Assembly: GCF_964204865.1 (NCBI RefSeq)
Contig: NC_135257.1
Span: 15,500,001-15,564,000 of the forward strand
Length of the DNA stretch: 64,000 nucleotides
From: Styela clava
Taxonomy: Eukaryota
Direction of reading: 5' to 3'
In this document: one piece after another, positions 44,601-48,715 of the stretch
Layout: every line of letters starts with the position of its first letter
Numbering within the stretch: position 1 is the first letter of the stretch
Position numbers and translations under genes: made by a program
The notes under the pieces: generated by a model
Databases searched by the model: none
What the model was told of the DNA's origin: nothing
The model's input: only the letters and a program-made list of their open reading frames with translations

Positions 44601-44706
44601 CTGGAAACCGAATTTTTTTGATCCATTTCTGCCGACAGACTGCTGCGTTCTTAGCGCTTATGAAGACATCATTTTCGGCAATATCTTCGATTTTACCGAA
44701 ATCCAT
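32680..44706 (-). CDS. GRK1/7: G protein-coupled receptor kinase, GRK1/GRK7 (opsin kinase) subfamily
   Basis: Twelve exons: 44706-44601, 43790-43582, 43418-43283 (alternative donor 43265), 43070-42838, 42417-42302, 41940-41837, 41537-41337, 37810-37671, 34796-34648, 34243-34112, 33476-33402, 32818-32680. N-terminus [12 protein letters not shown] (cf. GRK1 MDFGSLETVVAN), RH domain ([13 protein letters not shown]), [39 protein letters not shown], and C-terminal CaaX CTVL*. Confidence 0.93.
35498..37658. mobile_element. 2.16-kb hAT-type non-autonomous element in GRK intron 8
   Basis: TIR TAGGCTTGCACGTAATT ... AATTACGTGCAAGCCTA; perfect 8-bp TSD GTTCAGTC; subterminal CGTAAT repeats; no transposase ORF seen. 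Confidence 0.9.
37121..37385. repeat. Three degenerate copies of a 70-105-bp unit inside the element
   Basis: Units begin GAAGTTGAAACC(A/G)GG(T/C)GTGTT(G/A)GCGTC at ~37121, ~37228 and ~37298. Confidence 0.75.
38872..40524. mobile_element. hAT-type element nested in 38189-41190
   Basis: Ends CAGGGCTGGGCAA ... TTGCCCAGGCCTG; perfect TSD CACTATTC; GCGGGCCG subterminal motifs. Confidence 0.9.
40104..40455. repeat. Near-perfect tandem duplication, period 177 bp
   Basis: GTGTTTACGTTGTAAAATCTAAATAACACCTCGAG... starts at both 40104 and 40281. Confidence 0.9.
42173..42236. repeat. 30-bp direct duplication in a GRK intron
   Basis: ATCTCACTTTAAAAAGCTTCCCAGAAATCA at 42173 and 42207. Confidence 0.85.
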
Positions 44707-47032
44707 TGCTCAAGAAGTCTACTCTAAATGTCCACAAGTACCCTAGCTTCAGAGACTTATTACATCCGTCGCCTTATTACATGCCTCTTTGTATAGGCTT
44801 TGAACCAGAGTGAATAAGATTTGTCTTGATTTTCCACAAATTATAAACGTCGTCGTTCACTGCATGGCAATAAGCTACATATAATGTAATAAATTGATTT
44901 TCTCTGAAATTAATGAAACTAATGGACGTACATAACCTGTCATAATAATCGATTTTGCGTTTAAAAATTGTACCATAATCACTTCTGTTATCTTTTAGCC
45001 TATTATATTCAAATACTATATTACTTTAATTCACTGCTGTTGATTTCCCCTTGCCATATGTTGTTAACACGTGATACATTGGTAATAACAAGATAAAAAG
45101 TTCATAAGGAAATAATAAAGAAACTGAAAACTATTAATAATTCCTGTCAATTTTAGCGCAATAACCAATAATTATACCCCTGCGTGTTTGCTTATACTAC
45201 GCTAATTTGATGACTGAACGTACAAAAGCAGGCTCTCCAGAAGTGTGTGTACCAATATGAAGGTAACTAATTTTTTTCGCCTACTTTACATCAAGTTGTG
45301 TAAATGAACTGAAACCTATAGGCATATTGGGTATATCACTTGGCTAACACAGACAATCCCCGAACTCGTAATTGAACTAAAATAAAGAAAATCGGAATAA
45401 AATTATTGCCTAATTTTACCCAAGAGCATCTACCTAACCTCAGTTTACTCATTGAACTTCCCAAATTGATTGTATGAAATGTCATCAATCATTATTCTCA
45501 ACATTTGTTCAAAGTCCGTCCTAAAGCCTCATTTGAACAAACTCAAGGCAATTTTTATAGACATTTTTTAGTATCCTAACTCTGAGACATTCCCACAAAA
45601 GAACTTTACTATCCTCTATATATAAACTTGCAAGTGGCCTGCTTTGCATGAACCTCAACTGCTCGAAAAGCATCACATCAGAATAGCATCATGCAACGTT
45701 TTGAAACAGAGAAACAACCTACAAGACAGCAGCGTTTTAGAAATCAATTTTGAAGCTCATTGAGTTTTTTAATCATAGATTAAATCACACCTTGCTTTTC
45801 CCATCTTAAAAACGATTGATTCTGATTGGGGAAATAGTCGTATCAGTCTAACTGGAGCCAAATGACCTATTGATTGATACATGATATAAAGAATCACTTT
45901 ATCCGTGTTCATGTTTATCAATTTCAGTGATGTTTTTAATGGCTGAACTGGTACAGTAGAGATTAGGCACAAAATTATCACTCTAGCAATACGGTGAAAG
46001 GATTAAATACAGCGTTGAAACATGATACAAAATGCGATTAAATGCAATGATTGATTTTCGTATTTTTACGAATTATGCAATATCGAACACGAATCAGTTC
46101 CGGCGATGGAAAATGGTATGTGGAATTCAGCACTCAGAATCCATCATTTAACAAAACCTCGATTACGTTCATTACTTTAAAAACACTCTGAAGCAAAAAT
46201 CGGGTATGGTAGCAAAGAGATTGTGCAAACAACGCATGCCACTAGATCAATAACCAAAATTTTGGTGACGCAACTACTATTAGAGCTTATGTTGAATAAA
46301 GGTGCGGCCCGCGGTTACATCCAGTTATTCTGTCGTTCCCTTCTGTATTAAGGTTGCACACCCTTGCCTCCTTTCCCCTGCAATGGCCAACAGCAAACTG
46401 AAATTTGTGGAAATTGTAGGAGAACTAAATGGCAGACTTGCTTTGAACATGGATGACCACTTTGATGAAATCGCACTAATTCAAGAACATTATAGAATAT
46501 TTTGAAGTCTTAAACCACTTGCAAAATGCAACAAACAGCAAGTAGTACACAATCCTAAAAAGTTCCACTTATAAGTGTGTTATTATTCTCGAAGTACTTT
46601 CATGCGTGCTTTTAGTCGTCGCAGGAAAGTCAGAGTATACAAAGCTTGATCAACAGTAGTGCTAAAATGCAGTATGAATATTTTTTTTCGTGTTTAGAGT
46701 TTAGCATTTAATTTATCTGAAACTTATGAATATGTGTCATAACTCATAGTGTCCTTTATTAAAATTTGTCAAAGTTGGCAACCCTGTGTGTACAGTTAGT
46801 AATACTTCCCAGTTCTATAAAGATTGTTTCCCAACATGGGTATGTCTTGAAAATCGCATGAAAACGTTTTAGTGCTAATAAAATCGATATCTACGAATAT
46901 TTGGGTGAGAACAATTGAAAAAAATGCAATTAGTCTCCCTACAATCTCAAGTTCACGCTTTTTAGAAATTAACATTGAACATTTACCTAATAACATTGGG
47001 CTATATAATTATTCTACAAGTTTTGTTATGTT

Positions 47033-47746
47033 TAGGGTTGCCAACCGTACTTTATTTCAAAGGACAGTCCTTTATTGAGATTTTTTGTCTTTGCCCTCTA
47101 AATAAAAAAGGACGAAAAGGTCCTTTATTTCTGACATGGAAATGACTATAAGAGCTGTAAAACATTAAAAAATAAATATATTATTGAATAAATAATTACT
47201 GGATACCGCACACTAAACAACCGCGTGCCTAAGTAGATCGCTACAAACGCTTTTAATGATCCGAGAGGACCAATCAGAAGTTAATTCAAGTTCATTTAAA
47301 ATGTTGAGAACCATAACTGGTTATGAAGCAGCGACACCCAAGGTTCTAATTTTCAATTATAACATTGTTAATTTCAGTTTTCAGGGTACTGTTATTGTGG
47401 GGGAATATGTCTTTGTCTAGCTAACGAACAACGGTAAATAGGAATTAAAACTAAACGACAGACTTTGAATATGCATGACCTCTTTTTTCATGAAATCGCA
47501 CTAATTCTATAAAATTATAGCATTATTCAAAATTATAAATCACAAGTGTGTTAATATATCCTCAAAATATTTTCATGAGTTTTCATACAAAGCTTAACTG
47601 ACAGTTGCTGAAGTCGGCAAAAATTCATAAGAATTAGTTTGTTTTGATTTTTCTATCTATTCCGAGATTAGCAGTGGATTAAATAAAAATTTAGAGATAT
47701 ATGCAAAAGTGTCTTTTACTGAAATTCGTCAAAGTTGACAGCCCTA
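47033..47746. mobile_element. hAT-type MITE; a related right-end fragment lies at ~46420-46785
   Basis: TAGGGTTGCCAAC ... GTTGACAGCCCTA; perfect TSD GTTATGTT. Confidence 0.85.
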
Positions 47747-48125
47747 GTTATGTTACATTATCTATATATTTTTCCTAGAGTCTTAACCTATCGATGAAGC
47801 AAGCAATGCAATTTACCTAACATAATGATAAGCATTCGATTAGCCCGAGATAAGTCTGCTAATTTTCTTTTATGACACGCAGACAATTGACTTGCCATAT
47901 ACCATACCACACATTAGCCAGTTAATGCCAACAAATCTAACATAGGGGAACCCGCGACCTGATAGGGGCTTTGGCGACCACGTGGCCCATTGCCAAACAT
48001 TTACAAGTGCAAAAGGAAAGTGTTTGAGCATGTCGCACGTGCCTGCCTGTTCAATCTTGTCCACCAGAAGAAAAAAAAACTCTCAAGCTAATCCTATTTT
48101 GTTACCATATCCTAAGTTATTCAAC

Positions 48126-48328
48126 GGTGACCGTACATTTGAACCCATGTACATTTGAACCCATGCGTATATCCACGGGTTCAATCTATATGCGGGTGCT
48201 AAAACCCATGGGTTAGGGTTAGTATGGGTTTAACTATCCGTGAAACAAAACAAATTCCATAGGTGCAATAGCATACAGGTGCAATTGTCATGGGTTCAAA
48301 TGTACGTGGGTTCAAATGTAATGGAACC
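48126..48328. mobile_element. MITE with a 9-bp TSD (Mutator-like)
   Basis: TSD TTATTCAAC on both sides; inverted TACATTTGAACCCA repeats; internal GGGTTAGGGTTAG. Confidence 0.85.
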
Positions 48329-48609
48329 TTATTCAACATCACAAAGTCTAGTCTTCTCTAAACTGGAGAACAATCTAGTTTTAAGCAAATATTCCTGAAT
48401 AAAACCTCAATTCTGTGTCATGAAATCTCACAGGAATGATTTATAAAACGAGAGAGGGTTGTCCGCTGTAATTCCTGACAATATAAGCAATTTTTTTTAA
48501 ATTCAACACTGCCTTCATATACCTTTCCTACACTGAAGCGTTCTACCTAATTTATTTGTGAAATAAGTTAATTATTTGCTGTTAGGATTATTAAAGTGTC
48601 GTCACCCAC

Positions 48610-48715
48610 CTGCAAAACGAATTTTTTTAATCCATTTGTGACGTTGGATCGTTGAATGCTTCGCGCAAAGATAAACGTAGTTTTCGGCAATATCCTCGAT
48701 TAATGCAAAATCCAT
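48610..48715 (-). CDS. GRK1/7: Duplicated alternative coding exon 1 (exon 1b) of the GRK1/7 gene
   Basis: [35 protein letters not shown] + G|GTGGGT; same 106-nt length, phase and donor as exon 1a (44706-44601); 22/35 aa identical. Confidence 0.85.

Follow-up and report, generated by a model that had tools for sequence, protein, structure and literature searches.

Alternative first exons for the docking helix of a GRK7-like kinase gene in Styela clava

How GRKs distinguish between receptors is still unclear, and the N-terminal docking helix of these kinases, alphaN, is commonly regarded as a generic, conserved switch for activation (bioRxiv 10.1101/2022.10.19.512855). A kinase gene of Styela clava raises the question of whether this helix can be exchanged within a single gene, and whether such an exchange has a bearing on the receptor or the regulator with which the kinase engages. 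The gene is encoded on the minus strand of a stretch of 64,000 nucleotides (contig NC_135257.1, positions 15,500,001 to 15,564,000), referred to hereafter as the window, in which positions are counted from the first letter. Two first exons, 1a and 1b, precede the remaining exons. The explanation that we favor, with a probability of roughly 0.55 for the whole, is that 1a and 1b are true alternative first exons, derived from the tandem duplication of an ATG-bearing first exon in the Styela clava GRK7 orthologue. Its structural part, namely that one kinase gene has two alternative first exons, is held with high confidence.

Both forms are already public as RefSeq isoforms X1 and X2, and the suggestion in a preliminary description of this locus that the two exons would be easily missed did not hold. 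Since the locus is already annotated, the exons themselves are no discovery, and what the analysis contributes is their interpretation. What the locus offers is a natural gene in which the rest of the kinase is constant, only the helix and its linker are swapped, and both versions have been kept by selection. It provides a clean protein pair for asking whether alphaN contributes to the choice of receptor or regulator, and it bears on the diversification of photoreceptor shut-off in chordates.

Two first exons joined to one acceptor

The proximal first exon, 1a, has its coding part at 44601–44706 (ATG at 44706), and the distal one, 1b, at 48610–48715 (ATG at 48715). Direct translation of both stretches bore out what had been described for them: each coding part is 106 nucleotides (nt) long, opens with its own ATG, comprises 35 codons and one further base, ends in phase 1, and is followed by a GTGGGT donor, which for exon 1b lies at 48609–48604. 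A recount likewise returned 22 identical residues among the 35, with synonymous changes in 8 of those 22 codons. At the nucleotide level the two exons share 76 of 106 positions (72%), and the differences fall on codon positions 1, 2 and 3 in the numbers 10, 4 and 16, respectively. The pair was independently recovered by a repeat finder (44595–44706 and 48604–48715; 112 nt, 73%). The corresponding RefSeq proteins are XP_077971231.1, isoform X1, built with exon 1a, and XP_077971232.1, listed as "rhodopsin kinase grk7-a-like isoform X2 [Styela clava]", built with exon 1b. Each contains 579 amino acids (aa); 13 residues among the first 35 distinguish the two, and all others are identical.

Exon 2 (43582–43790), placed by RNA contigs and by exact mapping of the RefSeq protein, is the common acceptor exon and contains the start of the RH domain. 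Its acceptor (..acatag|at..) has the AG immediately upstream of 43790, and phase 1 is compatible with both first exons, of which 1b lies 4.8 kb and 1a 0.8 kb upstream. The repeat-bearing stretch that separates the first exons (44707–48609, minus strand) is an intron in 1b transcripts and the upstream region of 1a. The likeness between 1a and 1b does not extend beyond the exon and its donor: neither a 500-nt alignment around each copy nor a blastn comparison of 0.8–1.5 kb flanks revealed significant similarity. A search of 44707–48609 found no GRK-like exon between the copies, in line with the preliminary description. No third copy of the first exon was detected in the window by tblastn, and the 377-Mb Styela clava genome contained no copies beyond 1a and 1b; a third copy or a donor gene was thus rejected as the source.

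RNA-type contigs from three runs of one study (X1–X3) and one run of a second study (X9), all stored as assembled contigs, were compared over positions 42950–48900, with 31 letters as the short-side rule for contig junctions. The introns between exons 2 and 3 and between exons 3 and 4, serving as controls, had been removed at GT..AG sites in the X1–X3 contigs, which therefore represent spliced RNA. The junction from 44601 to 43790, joining exon 1a to exon 2 at GT..AG sites, was observed in all of X1–X3, the contig depths being 107, 32 and 16, respectively. The corresponding junction of exon 1b, from 48610 to 43790 and also at GT..AG sites, was observed in X1 and X2 at contig depths of 10 and 5, and in X3 a contig covered exon 1b, beginning exactly at the donor edge. 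The proposal that either first exon splices to exon 2 at 43790 is hence confirmed at the level of contig junctions, with 1a in three runs and 1b in two. The 1b transcripts skip 1a; no junction from 1b to 1a was found among the listed contig joints, contigs showing presence and not absence.

Separate leaders for 1a and 1b were found in the RNA contigs. The leader of exon 1a (44707–44768, minus strand) is covered by contigs that reach 44730 in two runs and extend as far as 44768 in the third; with a length of at least 62 nt, it holds one minimal upstream ATG-TAA. The leader of exon 1b (48716–48900, minus strand) is unbroken with the genome to at least 48900, giving a length of at least 185 nt, and one contig of 472 nt extends approximately 154 nt further (about 340 nt). 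The 1b:1a ratio of contig depth was approximately 0.09, 0.17 and 0.3 in the three runs; this roughly threefold variation between samples is a weak hint of separate regulation.

Comparison of the two coding parts by Nei-Gojobori counting gave a proportion of synonymous differences (pS) of 0.72, which is saturated, a proportion of non-synonymous differences (pN) of 0.18, and a dN/dS of approximately 0.09. Since a neutral copy would approach saturation at replacement sites too, these values indicate that both copies have been under purifying selection as protein for most of their history, and the claim of purifying selection made in the preliminary description agrees with them and with the unalignable flanks. 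The saturation of synonymous sites, together with the lack of alignable flanks, also indicates that the duplication is old, and gene conversion was rejected as the cause of the likeness on the grounds of the same saturation. Either copy matches its Ciona or Clavelina counterpart at only 11–14 of 35 residues, compared with the 22 shared between the copies, and both copies carry Glu11 at a position where 28 of 28 other GRKs have Ala. The mutual closeness of 1a and 1b and their common Glu11 therefore indicate that the duplication took place in the Styela lineage once it had separated from those of Ciona and Clavelina.

The docking helix and what its exchange may do

Exon 1 encodes the alphaN helix (approximately residues 3–20), as the preliminary description had proposed, and the basic linker that follows it. 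AlphaFold models of both forms, built with a 29-sequence alignment, placed a helix at residues 3–21 in the 1a form and 3–20 in the 1b form, with moderate local confidence and an overall pTM of 0.81–0.82. Both copies retain Asn12 and Ala18, which do not vary among 29 GRKs. In GRK2, the N-terminal helix enters the cytoplasmic pocket of the receptor via D3, L4, V7, L8, V11 and M15; the solved complex is that of GRK2 with NTSR1, and GRK1 engages rhodopsin at this site too (bioRxiv 10.1101/2022.10.19.512855). Residues L4 and Y13 of GRK2 correspond to L6 and F15 of GRK1, the helix is required for receptor phosphorylation, and mutation at GRK1 F15 or GRK2 Y13 lowers receptor binding or phosphorylation (PMC5518878). 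The first 25 residues of GRK1 are also the site to which recoverin binds (PMC6306944).

With an offset of +2, the GRK2 contacts fall on Styela positions 5, 6, 9, 10, 13 and 17. Three of these six differ between the copies (given here as 1a/1b): K/L at position 5, D/Y at position 13, where the GRK family has Thr, Ser or Asn, and S/C at position 17; positions 6, 9 and 10 are unchanged. A further difference, F/Y, falls on position 15, the equivalent of GRK1 F15 and GRK2 Y13. The core (residues 6–12) and the basic block (residues 27–34) are identical. A comparison of residues gave no clear assignment of either copy as GRK1-like or GRK7-like.

In the explanation that we favor, the GTGGGT donor of whichever first exon is chosen is joined to the single acceptor at 43790, as the contigs show, and the predicted products are two 579-aa kinases in which alphaN and the linker are exchanged and the remainder is constant. 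The separate leaders suggest that each first exon has its own promoter, in which case promoter choice would set the place, time and amount of each form. Because the receptor-facing residues 5, 13 and 17 differ, as does residue 15, the two forms would be likely to differ somewhat in how readily they couple to one active receptor (opsin) or another, or to a regulator bound at the N-terminus. It is plausible that the forms would be tuned to different opsins or to different Ca2+ sensors. For a real functional difference residing in the helix itself, we place the odds somewhat below even. A broader proposal, which we consider unlikely, would be that tunicates kept only the GRK7 side of the ancient GRK1/GRK7 pair and that Styela rebuilt a two-kinase shut-off at the exon level, with the helices matched to different opsins, for instance to larval opsins that succeed one another as Opsin1 and Opsin2 do in Ciona (PMC13170672), or to different Ca2+-sensor control. 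If such an exon-level two-kinase system were true, the gene would be a natural experiment in which a change of docking helix is by itself enough to determine the selectivity of a GRK; if the two forms were equivalent, it would be a tidy case of promoter duplication that carried along a mandatory coding exon.

Several points weigh against the favored explanation. In Styela, an action of the kinase on opsins is expected from orthology only. Across 28 other GRKs, the positions at which 1a and 1b differ are on average more variable than those at which they are identical (entropy of 1.56 versus 1.17 bits), and most of the 13 differences fall where GRKs vary in general, positions 13 and 35 being the notable exceptions; this pattern is as would be expected from drift under constraint. 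It would suit an account in which the duplication brought two sets of regulatory DNA, the 13 residue differences being near-neutral and without effect on the choice of substrate or regulator. With the start codon and an essential helix both residing in exon 1, an intact copy of that exon would be needed behind each promoter, and purifying selection on both copies is expected here too; the identical core and basic block and the variation of the 1b:1a depth ratio between runs also agree with this account. What it explains less well are the non-conservative changes at positions 5 and 13, which are homologous to receptor contacts, and the state of position 35, where Pro is found in 1a and in 28 of 28 other GRKs and has been replaced by Ala in 1b. 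We consider this account, the main rival, somewhat unlikely, and give it much the same probability as real tuning.

Exon 1b further seems to be the weaker of the two, which also speaks against the favored explanation. The contig depth of exon 1b was lower than that of exon 1a in all runs, the 185 nt of its leader contain five upstream ATGs, one of which opens a frame that overlaps the main ATG, its start context is weaker, with a pyrimidine at -3, and its Pro35 has given way to Ala. Exon 1b could thus be a minor and poorly translated by-product of an upstream start, formerly functional and now drifting out, which would leave effectively one kinase, the 1a form. This is improbable in our judgment: the frame, the ATG and the donor of 1b are intact, a pN of 0.18 at saturated pS means that the copy was not neutral for most of its history, and the haplotype of one run differs at five sites in the 1b leader and at none listed in the 1b coding part. 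The leader may moreover be shorter, through a closer start site or through spliced-leader trans-splicing. The RNA evidence has its own weak points, in that the junction contigs hold just 20–27 letters of exon 2, which is under the 31-letter rule; the support comes from a single study, X9 of the second study lacking coverage of the GRK gene; and the run type was guessed as RNA, though the removal of introns argues that it is. Short-sided contigs from one study are what might be met if the pair were an artefact, with an assembly duplication or collapsed haplotypes in the genome and chimeric contigs in the runs. However, the copies are 72% identical, have unrelated flanks and lie 4 kb apart, the DNA runs contain 79–91% of the words of the stretch, the exact junction of 1b with exon 2 occurs at canonical sites in two runs, and the NCBI pipeline built the same gene model. 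Short exon 2 sides are expected at a forked assembly graph, and an exact match of 22–27 nt that starts at both canonical sites is not due to chance. We regard an artefact as highly improbable.

Identity of the kinase gene and comparison with known systems

The window encodes both RefSeq isoforms exactly, in 12 GT-AG exons that extend from 32680 to 44706 or 48715. A search of 1.8 billion representative proteins with exon 2 returned a 579-aa protein, 100% identical, that starts with the exon 1b peptide. Exons 3–12 (32680–43418, minus strand) were positioned by exact mapping of the RefSeq protein, and the joints between exons 2 and 3 and between exons 3 and 4 were also seen in RNA. Exon 3 lies at 43283–43418, exon 4 at 42838–43070, exon 5 at 42302–42417, exon 6 at 41837–41940, exon 7 at 41337–41537, exon 8 at 37671–37810, exon 9 at 34648–34796, exon 10 at 34112–34243, exon 11 at 33402–33476 and exon 12 at 32680–32818, the last ending in the CaaX motif CTVL and a stop. 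Pfam searches identified an RGS domain at residues 66–194 and a Pkinase domain at residues 211–476, which is the GRK arrangement of an AGC kinase domain enclosed by the RH domain, and the closest PDB sequences were GRK5 (7e-116), followed by GRK4, GRK6 and GRK1 (approximately 1e-107).

We conclude that the gene is the Styela clava GRK7 orthologue and the only visual-type GRK gene of this species, and its earlier assignment to the opsin-kinase class was thus upheld. The CTVL end has counterparts in Ciona (CALL) and Clavelina (CIIL), and the GRK5-type proteins of the compared set possess no CaaX end. The nearest relatives are the "rhodopsin kinase/GRK7-like" proteins of Clavelina and Ciona, at 42% identity along the entire protein, followed by vertebrate GRK7. 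In an unrooted maximum-likelihood tree, built with no outgroup and containing a very long Styela branch, the tunicate clade was placed beside GRK7 and apart from GRK1 plus GRK5 (support of 84/84). A published tree groups the Ciona orthologue with GRK7 at 97% and reports a CaaX end with Leu in Ciona (PMC5795056), and an ancestral visual GRK has been described in Ciona (PMC3307776). Further, a separate gene of the GRK4/5/6 type was located on contig C10 at 20,995,848–21,003,549, with exons 64–79% identical to a starfish GRK5-like protein, compared with only 39–57% for the window gene against the same query; the window gene is therefore not a general GRK4/5/6-type kinase.

A match on contig C3 was rejected as a GRK paralogue, as it is intronless, has two kinase domains and lacks an RH domain. 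This frame (L002:1363-3600, at approximately 5.546 Mb) is an uninterrupted open reading frame of 745 aa with two kinase domains and a Pkinase_C segment, RSK/MSK-like in character, and the absence of introns from end to end makes it a possible retrogene. An older RefSeq model of the window gene, XP_039271166.1 (587 aa), belongs to the same cluster and has extra residues around the junction of exons 3 and 4 (the 43070–43283 region), which points to a different splice choice or to an error in the earlier model. Over exons 2–4 (42980–43727), there are ten coding sites at which the letters of the RNA contigs and of the assembly disagree; five of the changes are synonymous and five replace a residue (A181V, V166A, C134F, F124L and T57N), and C134F is also found in the older model. 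The part of the RH domain in exons 2–4 looks loosely constrained, consistent with the very long Styela branch of the tree. An open frame of 79 aa, P0002, resembles exon 2 (39% identical) and breaks off at the corresponding exon boundary; its probable source is this exon in a genomic contig of another ascidian. Metagenome scans with the exon pair and with P0002, and a protein search with the 46-aa open frame of exon 1a, returned no match, which says nothing on absence.

Alternative first exons that stem from tandem duplication are a familiar device. In UGT1A and the clustered protocadherins, tandemly duplicated first exons with their own promoters are joined to common downstream exons, giving a variable N-terminal part and a constant remainder; these first exons are large, encode whole domains and occur in many-copy arrays. 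The Styela gene, in contrast, has two copies only, each encoding a helix and linker of 35 residues.

Among GRKs, the rod and cone opsin kinases of vertebrates, GRK1 and GRK7, resemble the Styela gene in having an RH and an AGC kinase domain, an N-terminal docking helix and a C-terminal CaaX end; the Leu at the end of the Styela CTVL is shared with GRK7 and GRK1B (PMC5795056). As with the Styela forms, GRK1 and GRK7 are two related kinases that differ in alphaN, among other regions. They are, however, whole-gene paralogues that arose from a duplication older than the tunicates (PMC5795056) and differ over their full length, whereas in Styela a single gene varies only the first 35 residues, by the choice of exon. 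Human GRK4 produces forms alpha to delta by the skipping of exon 2 (32 codons) or exon 15 (PMC5015388). Like the Styela gene, it is thus a single GRK gene whose choice of exons yields more than one protein, with the differences near the N-terminus; unlike in Styela, a segment is present or absent, alphaN is kept, and no homologous ATG-bearing first exons are swapped. A paper on alternative transcripts of mouse Grk6 was set aside as a parallel, since it concerns the skipping of exon 10a.

The orthologues of Ciona intestinalis and Clavelina lepadiformis share with the Styela gene a first coding segment of 35 residues that ends in Pro and a CaaX end with Leu, but their annotated isoforms show no difference in alphaN: the Ciona isoforms X1 and X2 differ by one residue, and the Clavelina isoform X1 is without the N-terminus. 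An alphaN swap was likewise absent from seven other annotated pairs of GRK isoforms (two of starfish GRK5-like, shark and cow-shark grk7a, carp GRK5, goodeid grk7-b, and Ciona), in which the differences lie elsewhere in the protein; the sole N-terminal case was a shark start shorter by three residues. The literature yielded no paper on a GRK with a swapped docking helix, on these two Styela forms, or on the function of a tunicate GRK. As far as is visible, the two forms are limited to this species.

Repeats and other features of the window

The stretch between the first exons contains a short element at 48134–48320, with terminal inverted repeats of 32 nt that are 97% complementary and separated by 123 nt. 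Contigs matching it reached depths of approximately 10,000–25,000 in all four runs, X9 included. The element is a high-copy, transcribed repeat resembling a miniature inverted-repeat transposable element, its high copy number following from its depth in X9 too, a run that does not cover the GRK gene. No Rfam families were detected in 43000–50000. Contigs of low depth at 46134–46531 and 46930–47128, also present in X9, may represent repeats or an independent transcript. Elsewhere in the window, a run of 190 N, either a gap or masked, occupies 7569–7758. A direct repeat of 58 nt is present at 46461–46518 and 47486–47543 (78%), and a second very deep repeat, with no Rfam match, spans 45139–45536, where depths of approximately 6,000–34,000 and variant internal joints were recorded in the four runs.

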